NCBI GenBank assembly: GCA_964036045.1 | Contig: OZ038378.1 | Span: 118,420,001 to 118,484,000, forward strand | From: Eutreptiella sp. 'Long Island Sound 2002' | Taxonomy: Eukaryota > Protista > Euglenida | Length of the DNA stretch: 64,000 nucleotides | Direction: 5' to 3' | In this document: in pieces, positions 5,365 to 27,810 of the stretch | How the letters are laid out: each line of letters starts with the position of its first letter | How positions within the stretch are numbered: position 1 is the first letter of the stretch | The notes under the pieces: model-generated | What the model was told of the DNA's origin: nothing | What the model saw: the letters and a program-made list of their open reading frames with translations, nothing else | Database searches by the model: none | Translations under genes and position numbers: made by a program

Positions 5365-5560
5365 GCCCTACGTGTGTGCAGTGTCCTGGGCCGCTTGGCT
5401 CCTGTTCACCGGTGTGCCCGCGCGGTTTGCTGTGTTGCGTCTGCGGTGTCCTGGGCCACTTGACTCCTGTTCACCGGTGTGCTCGCTCGGTGTGTTGTGT
5501 TGCGTGTGCGGTGTCCTGGGCCACTTGGCTCCCGGTCACGGGTGTGCGCGCTGTGTCCGG
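5365..5560. repeat. ~62-bp GT-rich tandem repeat, 3 copies
   Basis: gtgtcctgggcc(a/g)cttg(g/a)ctcc unit repeated three times. Confidence 0.8.
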
Positions 5561-7689: not shown

Positions 7690-8640
7690 CTCTGTGAGGT
7701 GGGGGTAGTATTGGGTGGGGGTGTCTGGGCCCGGCCACAGCAGCGCCATGAGGCGGGCTGCCACCATGTATGGGCAGAGCTGTAGGGTGGTGGGGCGTGG
7801 GGGGGCTGGTCTGCTGCGGTTTGGGGGGGCTTCTCTCTGCTGGGGGCGCAGCCTGACCACCCACACCCACCGGTCCGTGGGGATCCCCCAGGTCCGTTGG
7901 GTCCACTTGGCGAGGCAATACATCGCCCTACCAAGGCGCTGGCTGCCGCTGCGGATGGAGAGCAGCGTATCCAGGGAGTTGCGTTCCCACGTGCCCAAGA
8001 TGTGGGGGTCGTCCGGGTCGTCCCCCCTGGCGTACGTGTCGAGGCCTGGGTTTTGTGGGGGGGGTGCGTAGTCGGCGGGGAGGAGGGAGTCCGTGCCGTG
8101 TACCACCCTGTGGTCAGTGGGTGCGTGGTAGTGGGTGGTGGAGAGGGTGTAGTGCAGATTGTACATGAGGTTCATGTACGTAAAGGGGGCTGGCTGCTGG
8201 TCGTCGGGGGTGGGGATGTCCCCCGGGACGTGGTGCCGGAAGTTGCTCAGGGAGGCCATCCGGGCTACCCATGTTTCCCGCTCCCACTCTCTGGTGTTGT
8301 TGGGGGTGGCGCCGGGTGGGGGTTTGGCCAAGTTGGGCTCGCGGTAGCGGGTGCGGCCCTGGGTGCTGTCCCGCTCCGGCAGGGGTGTCCGACTAGGTGT
8401 CGCCCACAGCCGATGGGGGGCACCCAGATCCGGCTGCCCGTGGGGGGCGGGCTTTCGCCGTCTGGGGTGGCGCGTGGGGGGCGGTCGTGTCGGGCGACGT
8501 GGAGGAAGGCGTCGAAGAGGAAGTCTCGGACGCCTTCCGCAGGGTGGCCGCCTGGACCAGAGTGGCCGCCCGGATGCGGGTGCTGGTGCCGAAGGTGCGG
8601 AGGCACAGCAAGTCCTGTTCCCCGAGTCCCCGGAGGTGCT
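7690..8640 (-). pseudogene. Ulp1/SENP-like (peptidase C48-like) cysteine protease region
   Basis: DLLCLR...GVRDFLFDAFLHV...MNLMYNLHYTLSTT (His 8152-8154)...VVHGTDSL (Asp 8089-8091)...RPQQ (7837-7842)...QLCPYMVA (Cys 7774-7776). The order matches clan CE, but the spacings are longer than canonical. Confidence 0.55.
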
Positions 8641-11157
8641 GCCGTACCGCTGCGGGGTTGTGTAGGGCGTAGGGTTCGGCCGGTGCGGCGGCTGGTGGTG
8701 CGGGGTGTGATGGGGGGGGTGGAGTGGGTTGGGGGGGGTGGTCGTCGTTGTCGCGCGTGGGGTCCGGTGATGGGGTCTCTTGTGGCGGTCGCGGGAGGGG
8801 GGATTCGCGGCTGGCGTGTGTCGGCGGGGGCATCAACGTCAATTGGCTGGTGCTGGCTGCCGCGTGTTGCGTCCGTGGCCTGGTCTCGGGGGGGGGGGGC
8901 GGGGGGGGGGGGTGTGGGGTTGGCGCTGTTGGTGGACGGGGGGGGCGGGGGTAAGTGTTATGCTGGATGGGGGTCTGGGCGTTTCTGTGGGTCGTGTGGG
9001 TGTTGCGTGTGTTCGCCGTGCGGTCCCTGCGGTTCTAGGCTGGTTTTGGTGCCGGGGTGTGGGTGGGAGGCGGCCGCATGGGCGTCCGGGTGGGGCTGTG
9101 GTCCGTATGTAATGGGTGGCTGCTGGTGGATGGTGCTCGCTGGTATGGGGTGTGGGTGGGGGGGCGGCTGCTGGTGGTGGGGCGTTCCTACTAGGCCCGG
9201 GTGTTGCTGGTGTGCGTGCGCGGCTCCCCGCGGGTCCATGGGGGTGTACCGTGGCTCGTGTGTCGTGGGCCCGTGTAGCGGGGGCGGCGGGTGGTGCTGG
9301 ACCGCGTGGTGGTGGTGTTGAGGGTGTGCTGGTTATGTGTGGTACCCCGGCGTTGGTGGGTGTGGTGGTAGGGGCTGGTGGTGGTGGAAGACGTGATGGT
9401 GTGGTGCGGTGATGTGTGCCATGTGGGGTGGGTGGTTCGTGGGGCCTGGATGTTTTCGGGCGTGGTGGGGATGTAGCTGGTGCGGGTCGCTGTAGCATGG
9501 GAGTATTAGGGGGTAGGGGTTGGGAGGGACGGGGGCGTGGTGGTGGTGTTGGTGGTGCCATGTCCCCTGGCTCTGCGCGTATGGTGGTCCTGGCATGGTG
9601 TGGACGTGTGTGGGCGGTGGTGGCTGACTGCGCTGCAGGGTTTGGGTGCTGCGGTACGGTGGTGGTGGTGGGCGCTGGCGGGGGCGGTGTTGTTGGTGTG
9701 CCCCGGAGGTCTGGGCGTGGGGTGGTGCGGTGTGGCTGGACCCGGGCCCTGGTCGGGGCGTCGCGCCCTGCTGGCGGGCGCGCCGGCGGGCTCCCTGACC
9801 TGTCTTGGTCTTCTTGGCCTGGTGGGTGTCGGGGGCGGGTGAATCCCCCTGTCCCCGTTGGGGCGACGGGGAGCGGTCGTGCCAGCGGTGCGCCTCTTGG
9901 AGGCTTGTCTTGAGGCCTCTGACGTAGGTGCTCTGGTCCGTGAGGCCCATCCGTGTGGCAGTGGCCTCGTCGGGGGCGGCCAGGTGGGCGTCCCGAAAAG
10001 ACGCCCAGCCCTCCGGGGACTTCTGTTGTGCGGGGTGGGGTTGGTGTGCCGGGTAGAGGAGTGCGCTGAGTGGGTAAGGTGTTCCCTTTCGTCGGCCGAG
10101 GGCGGTGTTGAACCGGCGGCAAGTGATTCGGAGGTAGGCTGCTATATCCTCTGGTGTCGTGTCCGCCCACGCTTCTGGCGTCAGGGCTGCTGCTTGGGGG
10201 GCCGGGATTTGTGGGTCTGGGAGGTGTAGGTCACGGGGGTGGAGGTATAGGGCGAGGAGGATGTGGCTGGCTGCCACGTTCAAGCCGCCTCCGCTGTGGC
10301 GTAAGGGTGGGCTGTGGGGGGGCAGGGGTGTGCTGCCCGTGGCCACGGCAGTGGTCCATGCGTGGTCCGCCGCGTCCGCCACGTAGTACCCTCCCAGGTG
10401 GTCCTGGAGGGTGTCGGTGAGTGGCCCGAAGAAGCTGGGGTGGCTGGCGGGGGGGGGGTGCGGCTGGGGCCGCGGGCCGCTGGCGGTGGTGGGGGTTGAG
10501 GTTTCCGCAGTGGGGGCAGTGGGTGAGGCGGTGCGCGGCTCCCGGGCAGACCCAGTGGTCTGGGTTGCAGGGCAGGGCCGTCTGTGGTAGCCGCTAGCGT
10601 ACACAGAGGGGACATGCGGTGGCTGACGGTTGGTGGCACCTGTGGACGGACGGCGGCGCCGGGGGATGGGGGCTGGTGGCGCGCGCATGCTGGTGGGAGT
10701 GCGTGCGGTGCCTGTGGTGCCCGTGTGTGCCGTGCCAGTGTTGTGCTCGGTGGATGGTGTGTAGACGTGGTGGGGGTTCCGTGTTGGTGTGTCATGGGGT
10801 AGGTTCTCATGGTTGGTAGAACAGGAGTTTGAGGAGGTGGGCTTGGTCTGTTTGGGGCAGGGTTGCTGCATGCTGCAGGTATTTGTGGGTGCGGTATGTG
10901 AGCTGCCCCGCTGTTTTTGCAACGACCGTCCGCTGCATGTGCGCCGCCGTGGCCTGGGGGTCCTCCGCGTGGGTGCGTAGCAAGGTGTAGACGGCAGTGG
11001 GGACGAGTCCCCTGCGGACTGCCTCGAGTACCTCCGTCTGCTTGAGGACGGTGGTGAGTTGCTGGGTCGCCGGGGACTGCGTCAGCCATCCGGTGTGCTG
11101 TGCTATGGTGTGGGTTGGGTTCCAGTCTGTGAGGGTGTCCAGTCCTCTGTACAGGGG

Positions 11158-11209
11158 GCACACCTTGAAGTGGTTTCAGGTTTCATCTTCCGCGTGGCCA
11201 CAGACGCAT
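11158..11209 (-). pseudogene. CCHC zinc motif of non-LTR ORF2
   Basis: CVCGHAEDET*NHFKVC; the TGA is likely a decayed TGG. Confidence 0.7.
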
Positions 11210-11604
11210 TTGGTGTATCCTGCGGGGACGTGGATCGAGCGGCGCGCATACCATCGGTGGTATCGGGTGAGGAGGGGAGGCTGTTGGAGGGCGAGTTGGA
11301 GTCGGGGTTTTTGTTGGTGTGCTGGGAGGCTATTCAGGGGCAGGGCGGAGTAGTAGAGGGGGGTGTGGACGGAGTCTTCGAGGCGTCGGAGGAGTTCGGT
11401 GTTCGCTGGGTGGCCCAGTGTGGTGGCCAGTTGCTGGATGGGTGTGGGGTAGTGGTACTGCTTGTCTCGATCTGTGTACGGCGTGTCCTCGGGCATCCAT
11501 TGGGGGGGCTGTGTGGCCGGGGGTATCGGGGGCAGGTGCTGCAGGTGGCTGTGGTGTGGAGTGTCCAGTCGCACGTGTTCGAGCCCTGGGGTGTGGCTGG
11601 TGTT

Positions 11605-12050
11605 CTGGTGTTTGGCCTGCGTGTCTGCGCGTTCATTGCCGTATGCGTAGCGGTGTGACTCCTGTTTGACGATGTGTAGGGCGTCCTGGGGGTGCATGCC
11701 CCTGAAGGCCATCCATAGTCCCAACGCTTGTGTGCCGAGGCCTGACTCGAGTGCCTTGCGGAGGGGCAGGTCCGCAAGGCGGCTGGTGAGGTGGATGTCG
11801 ACCGTGGCGTCCACGACTACCTAGATGTTGCGGGGCCGGATCGTTGTGGGTGGCGGTGTGGCGGTGACGGCGTCTGCCATGGTGCGCAGGTCGCCGTGGG
11901 AGGACGCCCCAAAGATGGTGGCCCCGGTGTGCTGTTCCACGTGGAGGCCGTCCGCGTGCCTGGTGATGCGCACGGAGGCGCAACGGACCGTGGGGGTGCG
12001 TTGCTTGGCGCCGGATGCGTCAGTGAAGTAGATGATGTCGGTGTCGCTGG
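11605..12050 (-). pseudogene. RNase H domain of the non-LTR element
   Basis: IIYFTDASG...GASSHGDL...VDATVD...VKQESHRYAYGNERADTQAK, with a frameshift near 11815. Confidence 0.85.
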
Positions 12051-13528
12051 GTATGGGTAGGCAGGCAATTGATGTGGGGTGATAGACGTATATGGGGTTC
12101 GCTTGGGCGGTTCTGGCGGTGATTTGCGTGGGTTGTAGTAGTAGCACTGCATAGACGCCTATCCCCTGGGTGATGATGGCCTTGGCTCGTGGGGTGAGGC
12201 GGAGGAGGCCCCAGTCTGGGCACCCCTGGGTGATATACGCGTACATCAAGGGGAAGAGGTATCCCGTATTGGGGTGGAACTTCCGGCACGTGATGGTCTT
12301 CGCCGCTCCTTGTCCTCTTTGTCACCGTGGAGGGTGGGGCCTTTGTGCTGTAGGGGGCGCATGGGTGCCTCCTGAGGTCCTGCGCGGTGTGGGACGTACT
12401 CTATTGCCACGCTGTCCGGGTCTGCCAGCTCGTTGGTGAACCTCCATGTCGCCGTGGGTGTTCGGGTCCAGGCTACGTGTGCCGGGTGGTCTGTGGGTAC
12501 CGTGTGAAACCAGGGGGAGAGCCATGCCTGCTGGTCGGCGGTGGCGGCGGCGGTGGGGGTGTGGTAGTGGGTGGAGATGAGGCGTAGCAGGGGCCACGGA
12601 GTGGCCAGGGCTGCTGGACCGCAGTGCCAGCACGTGCGTGGTACGCCCTGGTCACTGTGTCTGACTGGTGGTACATCGGTCTCCGGTGCATTGTGTTTGG
12701 GGATGGACCAGGGGGCTTGGTGTCGCTGGACAGTGCGGGTAGCATGTTTGTGGCCGTTGGGTGCTAGTAGCAGGATGGTGGGTGGTGTCCAGCCTTCAGC
12801 TGACGGGTTGGGCTCCTCTTGCGTCGTGCCGCCGTTGTTGAGGGTCTCGTGCTCGCTCGGGCGGGGCCAGGGGTGCTGGCGCTGGAAGGCTGTGTACACC
12901 GTGTCGATGTCCTTGGGCCCCGGCATGTCGCGCCCTGCTCTTGTAGCACATGCGCGGATGTACGCTTGGAAGACGTGGCGTGCTGGCCATTGTGGGTCGG
13001 AAAGGAACAGGGCGCGGTGGGCGTCGCATTGGGCCATGATCCTCATCTGTGTTGGGGTGATATACACTATGGTGACGGTGGCCCCCACGAGGCGCAGGGT
13101 GTCCACCTCGCCTGCCGGGTGTCGGTGGATGTATGTCTGCGTGGCCACGAGTGGCCCCTGTTGATCGCAGTGGTGGTTTGTCAGGATGGCGTGTGTGTGG
13201 TGTGGTAGGACGAGCTGTAGCTGGGCCCAGATGCCAGTGCCCACGGAGGTGGAGACGCCGTGTTGCGCGAGTATACACCGGGGGCAGGTGTTGCGGGCCA
13301 TTTGCGCTTCTTTTATGCGTATCGCTGCCGCCTCGCGAACTTCGAATTGGTGGTCGTGTGTCACCCTGTGTAGGAGGTGCCCTGCGTGTTTGGCATAGGC
13401 AATGTCGATCAAAGCGCCTGTATTGTCTCTGTAGTAGCGCCAGTGGGCCATCATGGCCTCCTTGGGGAAAGACGTGGGCCAGCCTCCGTGTTGCGCCCAT
13501 GCCTTCGTCACTTGCTGTCGAGCGTGGC

Positions 13529-14195
13529 TTAGGGCGTCTTGGGGGCGGGGGAGGTGCAGGGCTTGGTACCCGATGGCCGCATTGAGCACCGCTTCCATGA
13601 AGTACGCCAGGTCCTGCGTAGACAGGAGGTCCCCCCTGGCAATTTGGGGTAGCCGGGCGAGGCGCTCTTCCAGCTTGCTTGGGAGTGTGATGTGGTGGTG
13701 CCGCGTGGCCTACGTGACTCCCAGGTGGACTGTGGTGTCTTCCAGGTGTAGGAGTTCACCTTTCCGGATGTGGGGGGTGGGGTCCTGGTGTCGGCCAGCC
13801 CGACCCATTTGCGCGGGTGCACTGGGAGCTGGTGGGCGTCCAGGTAGGTTGTGGTGAGTTGGAGAATGGCGGACGCTTGCTCGGTGGTCGTTGGTAGCCC
13901 TGCGTTCTCAGGGTGATGGTTGCGGGTGGCCGTAGTTAGGAGGTTGTCGTCCGAAAAGTTGATGAGGGGGGACTGTAGCGGGTATGGGGCGTACCCCGGG
14001 GATACCCGTGCTAGCTTCAATGCCAGTGGCAGGGTGAAGAGGAGGTAGCGGAAGGGGCCTTTGGCGCCTCCCTGGGGGACCTCGCTGTCTGTGCCGGTCC
14101 AGGGGGTGAGGCCTGCGGCTGTGATGACGGCGTAGAGGCGGGTCTGGATGTACCCGGTCATGAAGGATAGGAATGGGAGGCCGATGGCATCCCAT
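13529..14195 (-). pseudogene. Non-LTR reverse transcriptase, C-terminal half
   Basis: WDAIGLPFLSFMTGYIQTR...VPQGGAKGPF (QG..SP motif)...NFSDD (YADD-equivalent)...VHPRK. The N-terminal RT part is missing. Confidence 0.85.
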
Positions 14196-14199
14196 ACCT

Positions 14200-17100
14200 G
14201 AACCTGAACTGTTGCGGCTGCAGCTGTATGAGTCTACAACACAGCAGCAGCAGGCTCCAGCGGAGCCGATGATCCTGTTGAGCCCTGTGAAGGCAGCAGC
14301 GTTGGATCCACAAGAATCAGTGCCGCCGACGCTGTCTGCAGCTAGCGTGCTAGTCAATGTGGAGAGGCATCGCTGGGTTGATCAACATGGGTGTCCGCAC
14401 GAGTGGCAAGCCATCAGCCACACCGGTGACCACGTTGAGCGCTTGCATCAGGTAGGAGACGGCGTGAGGAAGCTTCGTGAAGCTATGACTGCTGTCACGG
14501 ACGCGCTGAGATCGGGACTGAACAGGGATCAGCAGGTGTTTGATCTGTTGAAAACCCTCGATCATCACTTTGCAGGCATCGCTGTTGATCTGGAGACCAT
14601 GAGAGGAGACATGTCGGCACTGGGCAACGCCGTCACCGCTGCACAGCGCGATATGGGAGACCTATGGCCTGATCATCGCGGCCTGCAAGAGGTTCACAAC
14701 ACCGCCATGTCAACGGTGGAGCGCAGCGTCAACGAGCTGCTGCAAGTGGCAGCAGCAGCGCGCCTACGGCGGTTGGAGGAGTCCTCAACGCGTGCAGAGG
14801 CGAGCAGCAAGGGCTGCCACGTACCATCGAAGGTGTGCGAGCCTCAGTGAACGCCAGCGGGCTGCAGCTCAGCAGCCACATCCACAACGTGTCCTCCTCC
14901 CTGAACGACATGGGGCAGCGCGTGGGCGCGTTGGCGCGCCAGGAGGCGGCCATCGCGCAGGCTTACGGGCGCATCACGCAGGAGACAGCGGAAATCAGGA
15001 GGGTTACAGCCTCTACTGAGCAGGTCAGCACTCCTCAGCGTGTGGTATATGGGTTAGAGCCGAAGGTGGGAACGTTAGAGTGTCAGTACCAGACCTTAAG
15101 AATCCGGCAAACAACGGTGATGGAACAGTCAGACAGGACAGCAAACTTGTTGGATGAGCGCATCATCACAATCCGAGCGACGACGTCGCACCTGAACTAC
15201 TGTGAACAAAACTTTGCAAACAGCGCTCAACAGAATCACCATACTGGAAAAGGGTACTGGCGCCTCCACAGACTCTCAACCTCTTGAGCCACCCAATGAC
15301 CCTCCTCCTTCTCACTCGTGCTCTGGCAGCGACGGGTGCTGCCCCTGGTGTGCATCTAAGGTGTCTTCGTTGGAGGACGCCAATGAAGCCCTTGAGCATG
15401 AAGTGGCTCGGCTGAACCCACAGTACATTGACTTCAGGCGCCAGGTGTTACACCAGAGCGAGGACAAGGCCTCTTGGGAGGGGAGGTCTTGAGTGAAATG
15501 AGGGAGAGCCTCGAGGCCATCTGGCGCCAACACCTGGAGGAGATCAGGGACTGTCACCATCGCCTGATACTGGCGGAATCAGGTTCGGATCGCCTGCAAA
15601 CAGAGGTCATGAATCCGTTGGCCAGGAAGGTCAACGAGCTGGACAGGCAGTGTGCGTCTTTACAACGACAAGTTCAACACAACGCCCAGGAGTTGGCGCT
15701 GGTAAAAGGACCGCAGCAAGTGCCTGGACCACGGGCCCCACTCCTGGACGTATCCACCTCCTTGAATTTTGATGTGGCGGCGGTGGAAGCCCGAGTGGCG
15801 GAACATGACACCTCCTTCCGGGTTTTGGAGACGCAGCTCCCAGAGGTCGTTAATGGTATGGAGACGCTCACGAATTCGATGGAACAGATAAGAGGAAAAA
15901 TACAGGAGTGGGAAGATGAGTATGCGGATGAAAGGGAGGAGGGTCCAGACACCCCTGATCCTCGCCCAAACGTGAACCCCCTTCCCAGCCTTTCGCATCC
16001 CACATACCCCGCCAAGGCCGACCCTGGGGCTCCGCCACATGTTTCGACGGGAGAGGGCATTTGTTTCTCTTATTGCCAATATGGAGAGACTACGCCTGCA
16101 CCGGGGGTTCGGAAGCAGTTTTCTGGGTCGGGGGACATTCTCAGGTCGCACACCAACCACTCCGAAGCCAGCGGCAAGCGCCCCAACTTTGCTACATGAA
16201 GCGGGCGGCGCTACGTTTGACGTTTCAGCGCTGGACATGAAAGGCACCACCCATGATCGGGAGAAGCACGTGAGTTTCTCCAACGTGCAGGAATTTTTCA
16301 AGAGTGACCCCCTCTCAGCTATGGGTAGCTTGCCTTCGTTTGGGGGGACGGGTAAGGCCCCAGTCCTGGGCACACCCGACCTAGGGTCTTTTTCTGTACC
16401 TGATTGCTCCGTGCCCGGCAGTGCCCCCACCCACAAGGACCCAAATGTTCAGGTCAGGGTGCTGTTCAACACCGACAAGCTGGGGTTAGAAACCCTAGAC
16501 CCCGAGACTAGGCAAGTCATTAAAGACCTCCCCAAGAGGCTGGTCTTCCGAGGAGACTGGGCCACGTTTGAGCCTGAATGGGACCGTTACAGGGGTTTTT
16601 GTCGTAAGCGCATGGCGCCAGATCTCCTGGCATATGTTTTCTGCTCATGTTTCCCGGACGAAGGGAACTTATACGCCAGTCTGGCTCGAGATGCCGGCTG
16701 GACATACGAGCAGATATACAGCGTGGCCTCTACTATCGGCCAGGGCAGGGTGTCCGGCGAACTCCTGGAAAAGAAATGGATCGCAATGGACCTGACCCGC
16801 CCAAAAACTCTGGCCAACTACAGCCTTCGGATAATCCACTGGGTGCTACACGCTCGCCGCACAGCACCCAAGTGGGCTATCACCCCACAGCGTGCCAAAC
16901 AGGTGTGGCGCCAGGCGCTTGAGCGTCATGGAGGCCACGGCGCCGAACTTGCCGAGCTGGCAAAGATAGAGGCACTACACAGTGAGTTCACCTGGGAGGC
17001 TGCACACTCCCAGGTGGTGTACAAGCTCACCTGGCGGGATAAGCGCAAGTGACAACAAAAACGCCACGATGAGGCGCAGCCGGCAACTCCAGTGCAGACG

Positions 17101-17631
17101 CGCAACGCCTCGGCACCCGCAACCTTCAAGGGCGCATGCCACAACTGCGGTGATAAGGGACATCGAGCGGCAGACTGCCCCAAGCCCAAGAAGACGGATG
17201 ACCGTCGGGACCGCACTCCTGGCCGTAAACCTGGCAAGGGGAAGGGCAAAGGCAAGGGCAAAGGCAAGGAGCAGCACGGCGATTACGTGGTGGCGGGTTG
17301 TGGGGAGACGGCAAGCCTCTTCAGGGGGACGACAAAGCTAACCCCAAGTCAACAGAGACAGGTTGACTTGGCCCTCCGACATGCCACTAAAATAGCCAGG
17401 GATGACAAGTGCATGTGGTGTGGGGGTGCACACCATCCTTGCCAGTGCCAATATCACGTGAAAAAAAATGTTGCCCGTGCCCCGCAGACCCAAATGGAAG
17501 CCAAAGATGGTAAGCCTGCTGAGGCAGCCCCCCAGGGGGACGCCAAAGGGAAGGCCGACAGAGACACCCCGGCCAAACCGGCGGCAACCAGCGCGTCAAC
17601 AAGGGGCCGCTCCAGGAACCCGCGTCAGTAG
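14200..17631 (+). pseudogene. gag: Gag: long coiled-coil-like N-terminus, capsid-like helical region, two Zn knuckles
   Basis: Overlapping ORFs 14173-14850, 14835-15287, 15202-15492, 15474-16199, 16039-17052, 17092-17631. Knuckles CHNCGDKGHRAADC (17137-17178) and CMWCGGAHHPCQC (17410-17448); KG repeat. Confidence 0.8.
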
Positions 17632-18958
17632 AGACGTCGGGGGTGGCTTACGAGAGGCAAGCAATGCGCTCGCAAGAGAGTAGCCAGGCTGCGGGGGGCT
17701 GACCATGCTGCTGGCACCCCGCAGGCACGGCCAGCGTTGACGGATCCACCCCCTGTACTGAATCCGTCGGCGCTGAAGGTCATAATTTCTACTGCAACCA
17801 TACGGTCGGTGCTGGCGAGCCCAATATACGATCCTTGTACGCGCCGTACCCTCCGACGACCCCGAGTATGTGCGCTGAGTTGCCGGTGCGTGCCTGGTTC
17901 AACAGGCACGTGCCGGGAATCGGTGGTGCAGGGCAGTGCCCGCCGGAGAACGGGTGAAGAGAGCCCAGCACCTATCCTCGTCAACTGAGGGAGCCAGGCT
18001 TTTGCCATCGCTCCCACCTCATTTTTTCCGAACGGTACGCTCCAACTGGAGCGGAAGACATGGGCTGCCGCCATTACGCAAACGTTGGCCTCTTTAGGAC
18101 AACAGGTGGCGGCAGTGGCCGTGGCGGTGTAGCAAGTCACTACGATAGCCACCGTCATGTCAGCAACACGCAACGCTAGCTTAGGAGTGGAGCAGCCGTT
18201 ACCCTCTCCTCCCAAGCAGCAGTTGGTAACCCCGCCCAGGCAGCCCGTTACGGTCTGCCAGTGTGTCTCAGTAGGTTTAGTCGCGCCAGATGGGCAGTTT
18301 GATTGTGACAATTTGTACTGTTCGGTTCAGGAATATGAAGACAGCATGGGGGACCCGAAGTACGCAGATTTTCCTCCAACCGGGCTGCCTTATTCCATGG
18401 AGTGGATAATCATAGCTCAGGCTAGGTACAAGCCACCACAGTCCATACCCCCCCCTACCGCCACGAGATTGGCCGGGGACGGAGTTCACCGCTTCATACA
18501 CCCCCTCCGAGGTCGAGCCACGGCAGTTTAGGTGCCAGTGCCTGCGGCAGTGTGGGTGTCATTTAGCCGTAGATCCCAACAGCGGTACAAAGAGCAAGCA
18601 AGGGTTATTTGAGGCGGAGTCAGAAGAGGGCGATCCTATTTTAGCTCGGCCCCTCAACACCCCCTCCCCTGTCCACACCGCGTCCGCAGACAGCTTCACC
18701 GGGGTCTGGGGATACCACCAGAACCACAACGGCCAATGGAGGGGAGAAACCCTTCCAGAACCCCCCACAAGACAACCCAGGTTCTCCGGTACGGACCCCC
18801 CCACGGACAAACAGGTCGTCCAGCGGTACGGTCGCTTCCCAGGATCCAGTTCAGGTACCACCTCGGTACGACCCGTCCGCATTTCTAAGAAGGCTCAGGC
18901 ACTACCAACCGCAGCTGGGCGCTGGCCGCTACATAAGTCAGCTAGTCGTACTTAAAAA

Positions 18959-19380
18959 ACCGAGGCATACGCAGTACTGCCGAGTCTGAAGCAAGAGATG
19001 TTGGCATGGGCAGGGGTTTCAGGAAGGGAGCAGCAGTCCATGGTTGATGCATTTGCCCAAAAATGCAATGCCCAGTTCCCACGGTATTGGTCACAGGCCC
19101 AGGATGCCTTCTCTGAGGAGTGGGGCCGGGAGCACCTATGGATTAACGCCCCGTTCTCTACAATGCAAGATGTTGTCCTCAAGGCCATCATGGACCAGGC
19201 CCAAAGGATAATGATTGTCCCTGTGTGGAAGGCACATGATTGGTTTTGGGAGTTAAGAGATAGCCTTGGTTTGGTCAGACTTGCTGGCGGACCAGCCGCT
19301 CTATCAGGACAATGCGGGTTTTGTCCTCCCGCCATCCAGAGGCTGGACCACCAGGGTGGTCCTTTTTGAAGCATTCTCCA
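18959..19380 (+). pseudogene. Dam-like DNA N6-adenine methyltransferase domain (DIRS-type MT)
   Basis: YAVLPSLKQEML...VDAFAQKCNAQFPRYWSQAQDAFSEEWGREHLWINAPFS...KAIMDQAQRIMIVPVWKAHDWFWEL/EIALVWSD...LPPSRGWTTRVVLFEA. NAPF (19145-19156) is one base from catalytic NPPF. One frameshift near 19255. Confidence 0.85.
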
Positions 19381-19599
19381 GCAACGTCCGGGACAGTGCC
19401 TGCGACGCAGTTGCTGGTGCGTATGAGGGTGACAGTGACACCTCTCCCTGGTTACGGGACCACGTTGAACATGACGCCAAGAGGGAATACTACCGCCCAC
19501 GGTCTCAACGCTCGGTGCAGTCAGCAGTGCAGGCAGACCAGGAGGACCCCCGCTGTGCTTTCAACACACACCCATCAAGGAGGTCCCGCAGGATCTGCG

Positions 19600-20640
19600 G
19601 CCGCACGGGGAGCATGCCATAGCCTTTAAAACTGCCACCCCACAGCCACAGAAATGTGTGCCAGACACGGCCTTCCGCAAACTCGTTAACAAGTTTATTG
19701 CCCGAGGCTTCTTGCAGAAGTCTGATTCGGTGTGGGGTGCAGGGGCCTTTGTGGACCCCAAACCTCGGGGAAAGTGGAGGCTGGTTATTGATTACCGCCA
19801 TCTGACCTCCCAGGTGAGCGACGACCCCTTTCCCCTCCCGGTCATAGGGGATATGATCCTCTCGCAGGGTAAAAATGCACTTTGGTCTGTCTTTGACCTT
19901 GAAGACGGGTTTCACGAAATGCATTTAGTGCCTGCAAGCAGGTAATATACGCTTTCGTGACACCATGGGGGCTGTAAGAATGGCTGGTACTCCCCATGGG
20001 CCTGAAATCGGCACCCAGGGTATACCAGCGCATGGTGGCGGCCTGCCTGGATACCGGGTTTGGGGACAAGTTAAGTTTCACAAATCGGTTTGGTACAAAG
20101 CCGTACATTGATCACCTGCTACACGGTACCCCTGACCGGGACAATTTGGAGAGGAACGAAAAACTTAGTCGTCTCTGTATACAGGACCGAGAGCGTCAGC
20201 TACAGGATTTGTTTGAAATTTTGGCACACTACAAGCTCTCCCCGACGCCGACAAATTGCAAAATGTTTGTCACTTGCGTTAAATTTTGTGGGCACATACT
20301 CACACCAGGGGGTAGACACAGGGACCCTGAAAAGGTGGCCGTCATTGAACGGTGGCGGTGGGAGGACATTACCACCCCCACGCACCTTAAGGGATTTCTT
20401 GGGTTCACACAGTGGTACAGCGTGTACATACATGACTACGCGCGCATGGGCGCCCCTCTGCAAATGGCCTTGCAAGGTATGTGCCTCACAAAGGCACAAA
20501 AGAAGGCCCAAAAATACCAGCGGCAAACAGATTCACTGCCTGGTACTGATACCCGCCAAGGGGCTAATTTTTCCAATATGAGTCAGGAGGAGCTGGTACA
20601 ACATTACAAACTCCAGGCGAAAATTCACTGGACCCCCGAA
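19600..20640 (+). pseudogene. pol: Ty3/Gypsy reverse transcriptase
   Basis: KWRLVIDYR...PFPLP...DLEDGFHEM...MGLKSAPRVYQR...YIDH (decayed YIDD, 20104-20115)...FCGHIL...LKGFLGFTQWY. Confidence 0.95.
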
Positions 20641-20649
20641 ATGTAAGAG

Positions 20650-21170
20650 GTGTTTGAGGAGCTGAAACAACAGTTCCAAAAGGGGGTGATACTCCAATTT
20701 CCTGATCTCAGCAAGGACTGGTGGATCACTGTGGATTCCAGTACCTCCGCGTTTGAGGGTACACTGGAGCAGGAGGATGCTAACGGCAACCTCCGCCCGG
20801 TGGCGTTTTTTTCGAAAAAGTTACAGGGCACCAGGACCAAACGGCCTGACGGGTCGTACCACAAAACGGGCCAGTTGAACTGGCACATTTTGGATCAGGA
20901 AATGTACAGAATTGTTGCCACCCTGTACATATTTAGAAGCTGGCTGCAAACGGGGGTAAAAATCAAATGCCGCACGGACCACAAACGTTTGGAGTCCTGG
21001 GTCAAAGAGGACTTTGACCGCATGGGTGGTCCAGTGGGTAGGCGGTCCCGTTGGCACCAGTTGTTGGCAAGGTTTTCCCTGGAAGTTGTCTACATCAAGG
21101 GGAAGACAACTGGGCGGTGGATGTGTTGTCTAGGGGGGCATACCCTGCTTACCTAGCCAACCCCGACACC
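20650..21170 (+). pseudogene. pol: Ty3/Gypsy RNase H
   Basis: ITVDSS...LEQED...RPVAFFSKKL...DQEMYRIV...RTDHKRL...RWHQLLARFSLEVVYIKG/EDNWAVDVLSR. Confidence 0.92.
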
Positions 21171-21999
21171 AACGTACATGGGAGCGATGCCAACCAAGCG
21201 GGTTGGGATGCATCGGAGCAGGAAACTGCCCAGTGGGTCCACGCAGCACTTGTCGGCCCCTACGGTCGAACCCGAGCCCCACCATACCCCCTTACCACCT
21301 CGCACATGGAACGGCCCGGATGGAGAACGGTTGAAAAACCTGGACCTTAGTACCGACCAAGTACGGGTCCTCTGGGTGGAAGTGAACTGCACATTGCCAA
21401 GCACGGGTCACAGCCTGGCAGGAGCAGTTCATCAGTGGCATGCGGCCTTACGGCCTGTTGGTCATAGTGACGGGAACTCGGATTTCTATAAGGACAGGGA
21501 GCTCACGGAGCAGGCTGAAAAGGCTCGCAGGCAGCAGGCATTTGTCAATGCATTGCCTACGGGACCCAGACGTGCTACGGTGCGCCAGCTAGCACACAGG
21601 GTGTCCAGTGACGTAGTCAGTGTGCTCCATGATTCGTGTAAATACACGCGAAATGCCCCGGATGCACACGGGTTGCCTTGGAGGTCCAAGCGACGCCAGG
21701 CTAGGGCATATATGGACACACAGTGCTGGTACCAGGGCGCGGCCGCCTTCATGCGCCACACCCTTGCTACTGGCTGTTGGGACGGTCCCAATACGGCTAT
21801 GCTGCGCACGCTTACGACTTACTGTGTGAATGCACATCCACAGAGTGAGCCCCCCACACACGTGCAGTGGTACCAAGCCATCCAGGTGTGGTGTAGGGCA
21901 GGGCGCAAAGAGAAGGCAGATATGCCTGGTAAGGGCACTGTCATGATGCCCCCTCCAGACTGAATTCCTGTTTCACAACTGGGCCCCGCACTACGAGGC

Positions 22000-23130
22000 T
22001 TACCCTGCCCTGAAAGGGGAGTATGCGGCCGCTCGGACTTGCGTGGCGGAGCATTGACGCGCGGCCAATCATGTTAACGGCCGAGAGCAACTCCTTGAGC
22101 ACCATCACCTGATAGTGCCCAAAGCAGTGGCCTCGAAGGTCATACAAGCTGTGCATTCATGCAGTCACCAAGGGGTGGATAAGACGCCTGAAGTCCTACA
22201 CAGACGCTACAAATTCCACGAATACACCCCGACGCGGCTGCGGGAGCTCCTCGAAAATGTAGTCCAGCGCTGCGACACGTGTCAGACATGTAAGCTGCCG
22301 TGTGGTTGGCACCCAGGGATGCGCCACTACTACCTCATCCCCAAATATCCGTTTGCTTCAGTGGCGATGGACATAGTCCATCTCCCTACGTGGGAGGTGC
22401 ACAAAGGTTACACTGTGGACTGTTGCTTCGTCATTATTGACCGGGCAACTGGCTATGTTATAGCCATACCAGCTACTCTCAAGGGTCTCTACACCCCCAA
22501 ATTGGCGGAACCTTTTTTGGAGAAGTGTGTGTTTTTTACCGTTGTTCCCAACGAAATCCTGCGGGATAACGCCAAATATTTCAGTAACAAATTTGTGACC
22601 ACCCTTTGCAATTTGGCTGGCATCTCCACCCATGAGTCTGTGATCTACGATCAGAAGACCAATGGGAGAGCCGAAAGGGCGGTAAAAAGCGTCGTTGAAA
22701 CCCTTAGGGTCTACCTACAGGGGACCAACACACCCACCAGTCACCGGTACTGGAAATTGCCTTTGACACTGTGGGGTCTCAATGACCTTCCGGATGCCAT
22801 AGCGCCATACTCTCCCCACCGTCTCTCGTTCGGGAGGGATCCAATTGGATTCAGGGACATGCCTCCCATTGTGGAGGAAAACAGGTGCGAAGACGCGCTT
22901 GATTTTTTCTTGCGTCTCGGGCGAGAGCGTGAGGAGGTTCAGCAAAAGCTGACGGCCATCCATGAAATAAACGAAAAAAGAATTTCGCAAACAGCACCCT
23001 GAAAAATTGTGGGAAGTGGGTGACCGCGTCTGGGTCCGCAATTTGGCCAAGGGCGAGGAGCCCCATTTTGACAAGCTGGCGCGCAATTGGTCGGGACCAT
23101 ATGAGATCCTCGAAATTGTGGGCGGGGGTC
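22000..23130 (+). pseudogene. pol: DDE integrase with HHCC zinc domain and GPY/F motif
   Basis: VHSCSHQG...CDTCQTC; VAMDIV; IIDRATGY; LRDNAKYF; TNGRAERAV; KLARNWSGPYEILE (frameshift near 23000). Confidence 0.93.
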
Positions 23131-23260
23131 GGTTCTGTGTGGCGACCGCCCAGGGACCTCAAATCTTGGGGGTAGGCCGTCTCAAGCTGGCCCTGCCGCT
23201 GTTGTCGGGGGTTAAGCTGAAATGCGACCACCATACGCTCCGTCCTCCCCACAAGCACGA

Positions 23261-23405
23261 CGACAGCTGGGTTGTGGAGGATGTGGTGAATCTCAAAGAG
23301 GTGCCTTCCATTCGGGGTAACGGCAAGGTCCAGAAATGGCTTGTCAAGTGGAAAGGTCACCAGGAGTGGACATGGGACACCAGGGACCAATTTGTGCACC
23401 ATGTG
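23261..23405 (+). pseudogene. Chromodomain at the integrase C-terminus
   Basis: DSWVVEDVVNLKEV...KWLVKWKGHQEWTWDTRDQFVH follows the chromodomain pattern. Confidence 0.85.
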
Positions 23406-25092
23406 TGCGACCCCGTGGCTGGCCTACAATGCCAAGCATGGCATTCAGTTCCCGTTATGACCTCCCGTCACTCCCCGCCACCGTTAGGTCCCCTACATTC
23501 ACTACGTGTCACCTACGTTGACTACATGGCAGTTACCTTTACTGCATGTCACCCACAATATCTCAATGCGGTGCCCAGTACACCTTGGCCCACCGCCGTA
23601 CGGTAGCGGGCACTAGTGCACGTTTTTGTGTTGGGGTCGGTCTCCAGACGGGCCCTACCCTGAATTCTTGCTGTCGGGTTTGGCCCCGAGAGAGGCTCTA
23701 CCCTAAGTTTGTGCCGCAGTTCTCATTTAGGGGAGATGGCTCGGGCTGCCTCGCCAGGGCTCTGCCAGTGTACCCGTATCTCAATTTATGGTTTGACCCT
23801 GAAGGGATCCTGCCTGTCATTGCATATCAAAAACTGGTGAGACATGTGTAGCATCCTCGACCCCTGCGTGGCGGTCCTGGCGGGCTGCATGGGGAGACGA
23901 CCTCGGCCCGCCAACTGTGGCAGGGGCCCTGCCAGTGAGCCCACGTCCAACCCATGCATCTGGCGATTTGCTTTTTCCTCCTGTGCTCTCTCCCCCACCC
24001 TGCCATGCTTCTCCGTTTGAGGTCAGAGCGCGGGCCCGGATCAGCCACCACCAGCATTGAGCTGAGCGACTAGCCAGTCATTTCTGCGCCAACCCTCTGC
24101 TTCTTGCCCAGCACCCTGTGTCTCAGTGTCTCGGGCGACTCTCTGGCCTTGGTGGCTGTCGAGGGTTGCCGAGCAGAATTTTCGTTGGGAACGGGAGAGG
24201 GAAAAACGTTTGCGAGTCATTCATTTCTGCGCTGACCCTCCAACTCTGTCCCTCCACCCTGATTCATCAAGACCACCAAGCGCCTTGGGAAATGGTGTGT
24301 GCCAAGATGCGGAACGAGGTCAACTTATCCGGTGCTAAAGCCATTGTCATGGTGGTAAGTTGTGGCAAGACGGGATACAGCAGCTCTGCATGGGTATAGG
24401 CAGGCCTGTGTACCATGCCCATGCCTATGCCAGCTGGCCTCTACCTAGCCTCTGCCTTATTGAATCATTAGTTAGTATAGACAGTGAGCACGCGGACCCC
24501 GGTGCAGATCCTTACCGACGTCGTCGTTGCCGTCAGTGTTGTCGTCGGCATGTTCTGCGCGCGTCCCGGTGTGTCGCTGTGCTGCTGCGCAAACGTCCAC
24601 AGCACGTGTCGTCCTCAAGAGCAGAAGTCGTCATCCTCGTCAGCGTCGTCGACAACATCAGTCGTCGTTGTCGTCAGCGTTGCAGTCGTTGCTTGCTGCA
24701 GTTGTCAGTGTCGCCAGTGTGCTGCTGACGTGCCGTGCGTTGCCGTCTTCCTTCAGACTGGGGTCCTCAGCCCATACCCAGTTGCTCTGCTTGCGGCCGA
24801 CGCACCCTCTCTACCTGTGAGCCTCCCTCCTCTCCGTATGAAAAAAAAATGAAAGGAAGAAAACACCTGTCGTGGTTGCCCCCTTCCCCTCAGAGCTGAT
24901 CATCACTGCTGGCTTTGAGCTGATGTGGAGTCCCTACATCCCGTCTCTGCTGACATAATTCCGGGCCGGAGTGCGCTACAGGATTTTGTTTCTATGCAGT
25001 AATCCTGTCGGCGACGTCCGCTGCCTCCTACTAAGTAGATCTACCAGGTGCGCCCTCTTTCTGGCTCTACTTTCACCCCAGGGCGCTGCCTT

Positions 25093-25102
25093 AGGAGGGG
25101 AG
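25093..25102 (+). promoter_or_regulatory. Polypurine tract (plus-strand primer)
   Basis: AGGAGGGGAG directly abuts the TG of the right LTR. Confidence 0.85.
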
Positions 25103-25521
25103 TGTTAGCAATAGGCAGCAGAGTACAGACTTCGGCGATCGCGACTCATCTGCGAGGTCACTCGCGAGCGATAGGACTGACAACGTAATACAGACGACAT
25201 CAATACTCCAGAGTACAGACAGAATTACGACAGAGCACAGACAGAATTACGACAGAATAATGAATGATCATGAAAAAGCATGGTGATTGCATTTTACACT
25301 TCGTGTATGCATGTGTTCTGTAAAGTATTCTGAGACTGGACTTCTGTGTGTTGCACAGGGTCTTTGTGACCATGTTGACTTTGGATTCACGGACAAGTTC
25401 AACGATTACGGCGTGTATGAGCAGTACGTTGCTTTGAAGGCAAAGGTACAAGTGTGGGCTGGATTTTGAAACAAAGTTCACGTGTTTTGCAGCATGGGTC
25501 CTGTGCAGGAGCCTAGTGGCT
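25103..25521 (+). repeat. Right (3') LTR, truncated
   Basis: Starts TGTTAGC after the PPT. Homology to the left LTR stops after gcctagtggct (25521). Confidence 0.88.
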
Positions 25522-26600
25522 CCTCAGCCCAGCTCACCCCAACTTGTGCCTTCCCGGCCCGCCTCGTTGCCACTCCGTCGGCCGTGTCCAATAGGGACTA
25601 CAGAAAAGTGCCGACGCAGTGGGAGTACTGGCGCTTGGGAGCACAGATATCCTTGGCGAATAACCCCCGGCAGGCACGGAGCAGGTCATTACACAGCGTC
25701 GAGGACCCAGGCTTAGGGGGCTGAACCGCGTCGATGTATCCCTTGCCATTATGGAAGGACCACTGTTGGCCCCCGGGTGCCCTACAACACGCGGTGGGCC
25801 CCGCGCGCCTCCAGCACTTCCTAGGCAACGTACAACTCCGCTTGGTAACATCCATCCACGTGTACCGGGATGGGTATGCAGTACGTCTAGCTCCAGCCTG
25901 TTGCCGTATCTGCCAACACCAAGCCACCACTGACCGTCCTGTACAAAACCCGCCTTGTCCGGAATACCTTGCAGAGTAATGCCGTCCGAATCTGCTAAAG
26001 CACCAACTGCATGTACCGGGGCCACGGGGGGAGAGCTTCTGGTCCACAGAAACGTGACCAGTCCCGATAGCCTGCTGCCAGGGCCGCGTGGGCATCGTCT
26101 GCCTTGGTAGCGGTGCCTGCTGTTCCCAGGGGGTGCTTGGGCACCTCCATACCCACCCGCTACAGCCACACCGCGGGCAGCCTCCTCTAGTACGACCCCG
26201 ACGCCACATCCATCCAACAGTGCCTGTGGGCAGCGGTCACCGCCGCAGAGAAAGAGCCCTCCCGATCTGCCTGGGGTCTGCTGAGCAGCATACATACGGG
26301 TTAATGCCCGCGGCGGCCGCGGACAAGGTGTTCAAGCACCTCCACGTGGTGCATGAATCACTGGCGCGGATATCCATGAGCCAGGTGGACCGAAGGAAAC
26401 GATCATGGTGGGTGGGGTGGCAGTCACAGTCCGCCAGACCCTGTAGCACGCATGGCATGTCCAGGCTAAGCTGCCAGAGGGCGCACATGAGTCCCCACCT
26501 GGCGGACGATCGGGTGAGCTGGTTGGCCCCATGAAGACAACTACCACCTTCATGGCCCGGGAGGGACCCGCCGGCCCCTGAGATTGCTGTGAGGCTGGGC
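25522..26600 (-). pseudogene. Degenerate non-LTR ORF2 fragment containing RNase H
   Basis: Stitched frames ALADSDG..KAGFV / HVDGCYQAELYVA / SFHNGKGYIDAVQ / YSHCVGTFL*SLLDTADGVA fit the RNase H D-E-D-D layout. Confidence 0.55.
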
Positions 26601-26639: not shown

Positions 26640-27810
26640 CCCCCCGGGACGTCTCTATCCCTCAAACGCCCCAGGCAGGACCAGGGGGACTCAGGTGTAT
26701 CCCCTTCTGTATGGGAGGGGCCAGGCCTTGCGCATACCTTGCTCTCCCACGGGGCATCCGTATCCCCCAAGCGGCCCAGCCAGGACCGGAGGGACTTAGG
26801 TGCATCCGCCTCTGTGTCGAAGTGGCCGGACCTGGTGTCTCTTCGTTGTCCGACGGCGCGTCTCTATCCCCCAAGCAGCCCGGGCAGGACCGGAGGGACT
26901 CGGGTGTATCCCGCACTGTGCGGGAATGGTTGAACCCTATGCCACCCTCGTTCTGCCAGGGGGCGTCCCTATCCCCCAAGCGGCCCAAACAGGACCGCAG
27001 GGACTCGGGTGTAACCCCCGCTGTGTGGGAGCGGACGGACCTTGTGTCTCTTCGTTCTCCCGCGGGCCGTCCCTATCCTGCAAGCGGCCAAGGCAGGACT
27101 GGAGTGACTCGGGTGTAGCTGCCCCTCTGTCGGAGTATCTCGGCCTTGTGCCGACCTTGTTCTCCCAAGGGCGTCCCTATGGCTCAAACCGCCCATGCAG
27201 GACTGCAGGGACTCGGGTGTATCCGCCACTATGTGGGAGTGGCTGGAAGATGTGTCTCCTCATTCCCCCATGGGGCGTCCCTAACCCTCAAGCAGCCCAG
27301 GCAAGACCGGAGGGACTCGGAGGTATCCGCTGCTGTGTGGGAGTGGCTGGGCACCGTGCATACCTTGTTCCTCCAAGGCATACCTATCCCCCAACGGCCC
27401 AGGCAGGACCACAGGGACTAGGCTGTATCCGCCGCTGTGTGGGGGGAAGGAGATGGAAACGCGCACGTGTTGCCACGAGGCGGCCCTATCCCCCAAGCGG
27501 CCAAAGTAAGACCGGAGAGACTGGGGTGTATCCCATGCTGTGTGGGAGTGGATGGGCCCCGTGCATACCTTGGTCTACCAAGGGGCTTCCCTATCCCCGA
27601 AACGGTCCAGGCAAGACCGAAGAAACTCGGGATTATCTGCCGCTATGTGAGGGGACGGAAATGGCAACGCGCAAGTGCTCCGACGGGGCACTGCTATCCC
27701 CCCAACAGCCCTGGCAGGACTAGAGGGACTCGGGTGCATCCACCGCTATGTGGCAGTGGCTCGGCCTTAACATACCTTGTCCTCCCTTGGGTCGTCCCTA
27801 TCCCCAGAGC
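26640..27810. repeat. ~104-bp tandem array, about 12 diverged copies
   Basis: tatcccc-aagcggcc-ggcaggacc-gagggactcgggtgtatcc anchors at ~26656, 26761, 26865, 26970, 27074, 27178, 27282, 27386, 27487, 27591, 27694, 27799. Confidence 0.9.

Follow-up and report, generated by a model that had tools for sequence, protein, structure and literature searches.

Does the Dam-like methyltransferase (MT) sequence that lies ahead of a Gypsy reverse transcriptase (RT) at this locus belong to the retrotransposon around it, and if so, what might it do there? We examined a window of 64,000 nucleotides (the whole stretch of DNA analysed), in which an earlier note had flagged positions 17092 to 23405 as an LTR element carrying an MT. 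That stretch corresponds to the gag-pol core of an old, dead copy from a family of chromovirus-like Ty3/Gypsy LTR retrotransposons about 12 kb in length, and the family is one of the "DAM-LTR" elements reported in 2026. Taken together, the identity, architecture, MT domain, and proposed role given below probably make up the best explanation of the locus.

The complete element exceeds the flagged stretch, occupying positions 4267 to 25528 of the window, and is split by a 9.4-kb nested element. Alignment delimits a 5' LTR of 427 bp that starts with TGTTAG (4267 to 4693, plus strand) and a 3' LTR (25103 to 25528, plus strand); the two form a 420-bp direct repeat, in which the 5' copy is 92.4% identical to 25103 to 25521. 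The same alignment places the 5-mer CCAGC immediately outside each LTR (4262 to 4266 and 25529 to 25533, plus strand) as a target-site duplication (TSD). A leader (4694 to 4794, plus strand) opens, immediately 3' of the first LTR, with a putative PBS-like sequence, TGGTAGCATC, and a polypurine tract (PPT), AGGAGGGGAG, sits directly 5' of the second (25093 to 25102, plus strand). The LTR pair does not lie inside 17092 to 23405, the stretch given in the earlier note, and no direct repeat was found within 15000 to 25500.

Repeat matches and ORF strand identify the nested insertion (about 4795 to 14198, minus strand) as an unrelated high-copy element that does not belong to the DAM-LTR element around it. 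Positions 4794 to 5950 match at least 40 other places at 95 to 97% identity (3903 first-look candidates), with these matches beginning only at query position 524 to 536. Its long ORFs lie on the minus strand, and a Pfam search of its ORFs and of the other large ORFs of the window gave no matches. Copies of the DAM-LTR family match window positions 14100 to 15300 only from position 100 on, so that family homology starts at 14199.

From that point, all features lie on the plus strand. The 5' coiled-coil ORFs and gag (14199 to 17631; tblastn) include a zf-CCHC knuckle at 17134 to 17184 (PF00098, E 6.3e-6), and a natural 680-aa gag maps to 15609 to 17628 at 79 to 80% identity, interrupted by a single frameshift and a single stop (tblastn). 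A protease remnant (17737 to 18057) is followed by a 342-bp deletion, which removed pol residues 42 to 160 and with them most of the protease; where a natural copy retains the protease, LVDSGSQAF, with the DSG motif, and IVGYPFL can be read. A linker with no known domain (18058 to 18940; tblastn against natural pol, no Pfam match) leads to the Dam-like N6-adenine MT domain (18941 to 19406; PF05869 and mapping on a natural long-ORF copy), which has a frameshift at about 19255. The linker between MT and RT (19407 to 19759) has a 43-nt deletion at 19558 in the window copy, as judged against other copies and a metagenome contig. The RT itself (RVT_1, 19760 to 20305; Pfam and mapping) reads YIDH for YIDD and is frameshifted at about 19951, and the RT of a natural copy matches RVT_1 at E 1.9e-25. 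There follow a Ty3-type RNase H (20632 to 21156, also placed at 20650 to 21156; PF17917, E 1.6e-16; PF17919, E 2.3e-15), a family-conserved region of about 330 aa without a Pfam match (21157 to 22114), and the DDE integrase that had been reported before, with an H2C2 zinc-binding part (PF17921, E 3.4e-6; E 1e-9 in a natural copy) and a DDE core (rve, E 0.005) at 22115 to 23002.

The integrase C terminus (23007 to 23393) yielded sub-threshold matches, for an SH3-like region (SH3_Tf2-1, E 0.022) and for the segment at 23268 to 23393 that had been called a chromodomain. In that segment a chromo-like pattern is visible (W-V-V-E-D-V ... K-W-L-V-K-W-K-G ... W-T-W), but Pfam Chromo reaches only E 0.035 (14.5 bits versus a cutoff of 25.1, in a natural copy) and the cpSRP43 chromodomain E 0.061 over the same residues, so we refer to it as chromodomain-like.

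Both the LTRs, which are direct and flanked by a 5-bp TSD, and the Pol order of protease, RT (RVT_1), RNase H, and DDE integrase, seen in the window and in natural copies, are those of Ty3/Gypsy (Metaviridae) elements. The full Pol layout is protease (DSG), a linker of about 300 aa, a Dam-like MT of about 150 aa, RT, RNase H, a region of about 330 aa, integrase, and a chromo-like tail. The earlier reading of an integrase-type element with MT ahead of RT, unlike DIRS elements, in which MT follows RT-RNase H, is thus borne out by the Pfam order, as is the distance between the two domains: RT begins about 93 codons 3' of the MT in the same orientation, where about 90 had been estimated. The window copy is dead, and no protein can be made from it. 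Besides the deletion in the protease and the YIDH, it is disrupted by no fewer than 5 frameshifts and no fewer than 9 in-frame stops; its variant motif IV, also cited earlier as a sign of death, is no such evidence (see below).

The MT that had been recognized at about 18959 to 19380 was confirmed by an HMM search against the Pfam Dam profile. The ORF at 18998 to 19369 (plus strand) matches PF05869 at E 4.4e-11 (43.2 bits versus a gathering cutoff of 28.1), with the match restricted to positions 30 to 109 of the 169 in the profile, and it includes VDAFA (motif I-like), DAFSEEW, LWINAPFS, IVPVW, and WFWEL. Contigs from an independent run span 18956 to 19334 without gaps, and the frameshift at about 19255 is therefore not an assembly error. 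An AF2 model of the MT domain of a natural copy (pLDDT 87, pTM 0.76) predicts a compact class I SAM-methyltransferase fold that includes a motif I-like site for SAM, nearest to phage DNA N6-adenine methyltransferases. These were the top structural matches (E 2e-8 to 1e-6, TMq 0.53 to 0.62) among the predicted structures of BFVD, and a phage Dam superposed at an rmsd of 2.5 Å over about 145 columns (BFVD E 2e-8). Among solved structures, PCIF1 was the best match (Z 10.0; Foldseek probability 0.99 to 1.0; T4 Dam, Z 8.3; EcoDam, Z 8.1), with KsgA/Dim1, Erm, and METTL5 coming after it. When PDB sequences were searched with a profile, there was no match at E ≤ 1. Across 54 sequences, D37 and F39 of VDAFA are near-invariant. 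Phage Dam (PF05869) resembles this MT in profile match, predicted fold, and the order of motifs (D-x-F-A, then motif IV), but reads NPP[YF] rather than NAPF, and of the two only the MT described here is embedded in a retrotransposon polyprotein.

The MT is not confined to one copy. Of the family's copies, on the order of 100 in the genome, we inspected about 30, and in these the MT region is intact and in frame. Neither a lack of LTRs or of an integrase in full-length copies nor an absence of the MT from the majority of copies, either of which would have spoken against this identity, was observed. In other copies a single open frame, as long as 1768 aa, encodes protease, Dam, RT, RNase H, and integrase; in the longest, Dam covers residues 489 to 558, RVT_1 749 to 931, RNase H 1041 to 1189, and integrase starts at 1538, and this domain order recurs in a 1360-aa ORF of a second copy. 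All comparisons used natural copies. In one copy (L032), a direct repeat of 351 bp and 99% identity was considered as an LTR and rejected, as it is a 2.2-kb nested insertion absent from other copies. On a metagenome contig (L043) there is a gene for a 1438-aa Dam-RT-RH-INT protein whose MT domain is 57% identical, and long representatives from a library of 1.8 billion proteins have the order Dam-RT-RH-INT in common. The MT domain is kept between lineages that are just 35 to 57% identical, approximately. The metagenome matches include estuary metagenomes.

The earlier note had taken the arrangement to be possibly new. The architecture is real, but it is already published and makes no new category: the DAM-LTR architecture, including a Euglena DAM-LTR/DIRS group, was described by Fernandez-Moreno et al. 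(May 2026; bioRxiv 10.64898/2026.05.21.726589). Like our family, in which PF05869 lies in one ORF with RT and DDE integrase, the Euglena group consists of Ty3/Gypsy LTR elements with a PF05869 Dam in the Pol polyprotein, part of it with a chromodomain-type tail, and has a compact MT with a five-stranded sheet, which lacks the N-terminal portions that serve catalysis and recognition in bacterial Dam. The hosts are also alike, Euglena there and here a genome with the E. gracilis spliced leader: the sequence of the E. gracilis SL primer (PMC5654406) occurs 5458 times, versus 0 for a control, and the dinoflagellate spliced leader has 0 matches in the genome. The two differ in motif IV, as almost all DAMs in the preprint have Asn-Pro-Pro whereas our family has Asn-Ala-Pro and its clade is more eroded; the text of the preprint is silent on the protease-DAM-RT position, dUTPase-carrying relatives, and selection tests (bioRxiv 10.64898/2026.05.21.726589). 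The preprint regards DIRS as the likely donor of the MT domain (bioRxiv 10.64898/2026.05.21.726589). DIRS1-like elements (Goodwin and Poulter; PMC3266345) have a Dam-like MT of the same domain family, but they combine it with a tyrosine recombinase, inverted/split repeats, and an MT placed after RT-RNase H, whereas the element here has a DDE integrase, LTRs that are direct and bordered by a 5-bp TSD, and the MT before RT.

At motif IV (19145 to 19156 in the window copy), the canonical [DN]-P-P-[YFW] is absent and N-A-P-F stands in its place. The earlier note had read this as a lesion and proposed a genome-wide consensus to look for an intact NPPF. All of the approximately 30 family copies examined have N-A (two read NASF), and NAPF is a state fixed across the family rather than a lesion of this copy. 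Pattern counts across the genome were 100 for W-x-NAPF (control, 23) versus 4826 for W-x-NPPF (control, 36), and about 4800 other copies retain NPPF, including two abundant families known from their protease-MT-RT part. The clade to which the family belongs has eroded catalytic motifs (NAPF, NGPF, HPPD), and tetrads in the sister sub-clade read NGPF, HPPH, HCPH, HAPK, HPTI, or HPPD, of which HPPD, HPPH, and NGPF are without the Asn and/or the stacking aromatic residue.

Despite NAPF, the pattern of variation shows an MT domain kept by purifying selection. Variants shared among the 30 copies comprise 15 nonsynonymous and 25 synonymous changes (pN/pS, 0.16), versus 95 and 45 among singletons (pN/pS, 0.57; Fisher P = 0.0008). 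On shared variants, pN/pS was 0.70 in the adjacent MT-to-RT linker, which is almost neutral, and 0.34 in RT. The giant clade elements of 17 to 19 kb carry a dUTPase and an HPPD-type domain. In two recently inserted HPPD elements (LTRs 99.8 to 99.9% identical, Pol 30% different), the HPPD domain has a pN of 0.12 versus 0.22 to 0.33 in the linkers, with a dN/dS of about 0.08, and is as conserved as integrase and dUTPase.

What would such a domain do? In the mechanism that we tentatively propose, it would be made within Gag-Pol, packaged alongside RT, and act in cis, either on the intermediate through which the element replicates (RNA:DNA hybrid or double-stranded cDNA) or on the freshly inserted copy, depositing 6mA with SAM as donor, while the chromo-like integrase tail would bias the landing site. 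In Euglena, 6mA marks a small class of 5mC-free, permissive promoters; therefore, a 6mA-marked new copy would start transcription-permissive rather than CpG-methylated by default. We know of no TE-borne DAM for which activity has been demonstrated. The idea of 6mA marking coincides with the hypothesis of the preprint, which reports a higher proportion of 6mA-methylated DAM-LTR copies in E. gracilis, no 6mA upon expression in dam-deficient E. coli, and low to absent LTR expression in E. gracilis (bioRxiv 10.64898/2026.05.21.726589). Several observations count against this exact route of cis-acting deposition, which we rate below an even chance: NAP in place of the nearly universal Asn-Pro-Pro, together with the eroded tetrads of the clade; the RNA adenine methyltransferases among the structural matches (PCIF1, the top solved structure, KsgA, METTL5, and Erm); and the silence of TE DAMs in E. 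coli, scant LTR expression in E. gracilis, and a window copy that is dead as a coding sequence.

It is possible, if short of an even chance, that the MT domain of the family and clade is instead a pseudo-enzyme without methylation, putatively kept for a noncatalytic role such as binding nucleic acid or SAM in the particle, or steering integration by recognition of adenine or 6mA in the DNA of the host. NAPF fixed in the family, the tetrads of the sister sub-clade, the conservation of the HPPD domain in the two recent elements, and the inactivity of TE DAMs in E. coli all fit this. However, both the Asn and the aromatic residue survive in N-A-P-F, which makes an activity that is lowered or changed no less plausible than a complete loss; D-x-F-A, the motif I-like sequence, is kept as well, and some of the unusual tetrads may come from representatives that have decayed. 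A broader form, which we likewise put forward only as a conjecture, is that a whole clade of Euglena DAM-LTR elements, NAPF family and giant HPPD elements alike, swapped the NPPF tetrad under selection as strong as that on integrase, and that the captured Dam domain is now a noncatalytic or re-purposed module, e.g., one that reads or binds adenine, 6mA, SAM, or the intermediate of replication.

It is unlikely that the MT methylates RNA rather than DNA, putatively placing m6A on the element's genomic RNA or the RNA strand of the hybrid and affecting stability, packaging, or translation. PCIF1, an mRNA cap adenosine N6-methyltransferase, and the other RNA enzymes listed above fit this reading, as does an MT of about 150 aa without a target-recognition domain for double-stranded DNA, but the matches to phage DNA Dam are much stronger (PF05869 E 4e-11; BFVD E 2e-8), and the preprint sees more 6mA on DAM-LTR DNA (bioRxiv 10.64898/2026.05.21.726589). 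Very improbable is a functionless passenger whose decay is still to come; the noncanonical motif and the lack of demonstrated activity would suit it, but not purifying selection beside an almost neutral linker or retention across such divergent lineages. Finally, a secondary insertion of a DIRS fragment in one copy, or an assembly chimera, can be dismissed, for although nested insertions are common (one inside the window element, one inside L032) and the preprint mentions possible chimeras in E. gracilis (bioRxiv 10.64898/2026.05.21.726589), the MT shares its reading frame with RT and integrase in a metagenome contig as well as in independent copies spread over many chromosomes, Pfam found no tyrosine recombinase (Phage_integrase) in the window or natural copies, and independent-run contigs reproduce the MT-RT junction.

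The addition made by this window is modest but usable, namely, a noncanonical Dam motif that is conserved rather than decayed. Related families in one genome with NPPF (thousands of copies), NAPF, and HPPD provide a natural experiment for asking if Dam domains carried by TEs write 6mA at all, and a comparison of 6mA across these families would bear directly on the proposed writing in cis versus another role. No DNMT domain was found, so the family is not an "EpiLTR." Retrotransposons with cytosine methyltransferases (de Mendoza et al. 2018; PMC5890265) follow the same logic, in that a DNA-modifying enzyme could shape the element's own epigenetic state, but theirs is a DNMT3-like C5-cytosine enzyme rather than a Dam-like N6-adenine one, and their hosts are Symbiodiniaceae and charophytes.

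The methyltransferase-like (MT) domain in the window lies in the plus-strand open reading frame (ORF) 18998-19369, which matched the Pfam Dam profile (PF05869) with an E value of 4.4e-11 and 43.2 bits (gathering cutoff, 28.1) and contains all of the MT motifs listed in the earlier note. Neighboring plus-strand ORFs matched zf-CCHC (E, 6.3e-6), RVT_1, RT_RNaseH (E, 1.6e-16), Integrase_H2C2 (E, 3.4e-6), and, weakly, rve (DDE core). To set the domain borders, a natural copy with a long ORF was mapped to the window by tblastn; the MT domain fell at 18941-19406, and the reverse transcriptase (RT) began at ∼19760, both on the plus strand. The profile match, this mapping, and the other copies confirm the earlier claim of a Dam-like MT upstream of RT in an integrase-type element. 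The window copy is also dead, as had been proposed: a 342-bp deletion after 18057 removed pol residues 42 to 160 (most of the protease), the frame changes near 18504, 19255, 19559, 19951, and 21999, at least nine in-frame stops are present, and the RT has YIDH in place of YIDD. The frameshift in the MT region is real because public-run contigs cover 18956-19334 without gaps. Further, a 1,259-nt estuary metagenome contig with the same MT-RT stretch (∼93% identity to the window copy) has extra letters at 19254, 19558, 19662, and 19950, so the lesions at these positions are specific to the window copy.

The direct long terminal repeats (LTRs) described in the earlier note do exist, but not within 15000-25500, where no direct repeats were found. 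Self-comparison of the whole window instead paired 4267-4686 with 25103-25521, a 420-bp repeat with 92.4% identity. Alignment indicated that the LTRs begin with TGTTAG and have a target-site duplication, CCAGC, directly outside them (4262-4266 and 25529-25533). A purine run, AGGAGGGGAG, is found immediately 5' of the 3' LTR, and immediately 3' of the 5' LTR is TGGTAGCATC, by appearance a putative primer-binding site. When 4267-5950 was used as a query, matches elsewhere (95 to 97% identity; 3,903 first-look candidates) started only at about position 528 of the query, and copies of the window element's own family, here called the NAPF family after its motif IV tetrad, aligned to 14100-15300 only beyond position 100. 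Together, the LTR pair and these homology breaks define a DAM-bearing element of ∼12 kb that spans 4267-25528 and contains a 9.4-kb nested insertion. The insertion (4795-14198, minus strand) is a different, abundant element; its minus-strand ORFs are long and proline rich, an RT-like FSDD motif is present, and two of its ORFs had no match in Pfam. The family copy on contig 8 (L031) is homologous to window positions 14749-25521 at ∼90%. The window also contains a tandem array of 415- to 426-bp units (1980-3840), a 104-bp satellite of ∼10 units (26641-27770), a dispersed duplication of ∼2.2 kb (38020-44213; 92% identity), and a 3.25-kb tandem duplication (52852-59354; 95% identity).

We conclude with high confidence that the window element belongs to a Euglena DAM-LTR family and is a dead copy. 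The earlier note had left room for this architecture being novel, but it has already been published: a preprint of 22 May 2026 claims the first report of DAM domains in non-DIRS LTR retrotransposons, infers that Ty3/Gypsy elements repeatedly acquired the domain from DIRS, and defines a Euglena DAM-LTR/DIRS group with chromodomains and DNMTs in some members (bioRxiv 10.64898/2026.05.21.726589). Its text does not mention a dUTPase or a protease-side DAM position. The preprint states that the Asn-Pro-Pro triplet is near-universal in DAMs, whereas the NAPF family has N-A-P.

To describe the fold, we used an AlphaFold2 model of a natural MT domain built from an alignment of 54 relatives, which was confident across residues 1 to 150 (pLDDT, 87; pTM, 0.76). 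Phage DNA N6-adenine methyltransferases were the best matches among predicted viral structures (E, 2e-8 to 1e-6; TMq, 0.53 to 0.62; rmsd, ∼2.5 Å over ∼145 columns). The top solved structures were PCIF1 (Z, 10.0), KsgA/Dim1/Erm, T4 Dam (Z, 8.3), EcoDam (Z, 8.1), and M.TaqI; the MT profile had no match among PDB sequences. Near-invariant residues were D37 and F39 in the motif I-like VDAFA and L67, W68, and P72 around motif IV.

Selection was examined in 30 natural copies aligned to one natural reference copy, with no consensus used. We treated singletons as mostly postinsertion decay and shared variants as mostly change in active lineages. In the MT domain, shared variants had a nonsynonymous-to-synonymous count of 15:25 (pN/pS, 0.16), compared to 95:45 for singletons (pN/pS, 0.57; Fisher P = 0.0008), indicating purifying selection on the domain. 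The shared MT variants also departed from a site-based neutral expectation (P = 2e-8) and from shared variants of the MT-RT linker (29:13; pN/pS, 0.70; P = 0.007); shared RT variants were 26:22 (pN/pS, 0.34). The MT would mark the element's own DNA in cis with 6mA, leading to a permissive chromatin state. For the NAPF family, a pseudoenzyme MT competes seriously with such marking. In favor of a pseudoenzyme stand the N-A-P triplet and published assays in dam-deficient Escherichia coli, in which a gain of 6mA was not seen; in favor of marking, a higher share of DAM-LTR copies was 6mA methylated in Euglena gracilis (bioRxiv 10.64898/2026.05.21.726589).

Decay of the window copy, the earlier explanation of NAPF, is ruled out since the examined family copies, long-ORF copies included, have L-W-[IVM]-N-A-P-F, with two N-A-S-F exceptions. 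Across the genome, the W-x-N-A-P-F DNA pattern occurred 100 times (control, 23) and W-x-N-P-P-F occurred 4,826 times (control, 36). The two dominant NPPF families also have the order protease-MT-RT, so this layout is general in the genome, with the NAPF family as a small minority. These very abundant families (L047 to L058; several places on G000:C1) have WINPPFHL and WINPPFDV, and the 3-kb pieces read show an unusual D-N-G-S protease motif. In the MT-domain tree, the NAPF family grouped with other NAPF representatives and the NPPF-bearing metagenome contig L043 (support, 93/89); the sister subclade contained NGPF, HPPH, HCPH, HAPK, HPTI, and HPPD, and the outgroups had NPPF. Only about half of the 132 closest representatives covering the motif were canonical; the tetrads included 53 NPPF, 9 CPPF, 8 NAPF, 5 HPPD, and 5 NPPI, along with others, and part of the noncanonical tetrads may represent decayed copies.

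Two giant HPPD-type LTR retrotransposons of 17.5 to 19 kb were also recovered (L033, G000:C1:41918000-41927999; L034, G000:C13:31395000-31404999; flanks, L039 to L042), with LTRs of 1,364 and 2,179 bp that are 99.8 to 99.9% identical. Their Pol proteins (2,431 to 2,449 amino acids [aa]) run from a dUTPase through an HPPD-type MT-like domain, RT, and RNase H to integrase. At 30% Pol divergence between the two, the MT-like domain had a pN of 0.12 and a dN/dS of ∼0.08, ratios that are rough because dS is near saturation; its pN resembled that of the dUTPase and integrase and was well under that of the linkers (0.22 to 0.33). This second family gives the same picture of conservation as the NAPF family. 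NPPF, NAPF, and HPPD families side by side within one genome constitute a natural experiment.

Searched in all six frames with the 123-aa ORF, the whole genome yielded 13,862 first-look candidates, and all 153 scored matches were significant, so the MT is not confined to one copy. L031 has a 1,768-aa open frame with Dam (489-558), RVT_1 (749-931), RNase H (1041-1189), and Integrase_H2C2 (from 1538), and the contig 12 copy (L032) has the same domain order in a 1,360-aa frame, with the protease motif LVDSGSQAF upstream and a 680-aa gag that includes a CCHC knuckle. Gag and pro-pol of L032 are in one frame, separated by one stop codon (L032:43-3330), which suggests that Pol may be expressed by stop codon readthrough rather than frameshifting. 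A 2.2-kb insertion within the integrase end of L032 (7671-9866), a small LTR-like element with 351-bp terminal direct repeats (99% identical), is lacking in other family copies. Outside this genome, the 7-kb metagenome contig L043 encodes gag and a 1,438-aa Dam-RT-RNaseH-integrase protein with an MT domain 57% identical, and 1,092 relatives (E ≤ 0.001), the long ones in this order, were found when 1.8 billion representative proteins were searched exhaustively. A DIRS fragment dropped into the window copy alone is therefore ruled out. One library protein (P0129; 1,114 aa) has the order integrase (rve)-Dam-RVT_2, a Ty1/Copia-type order with Dam placed between integrase and RT; this may be the "Chloro-Ochrophyta" layout of the preprint.

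The dinoflagellate spliced leader was absent from the genome. For the Euglena gracilis spliced leader, the 24-nt core, a string identical to the published spliced-leader primer (PMC5654406), occurred 5,458 times (reversed control, 0), which identifies the host as a Euglena. Estuary metagenome contigs compared with window positions 18600-21200 carry the NAPF family at ∼90 to 95% identity, so Euglena-like DNA is present in those samples.
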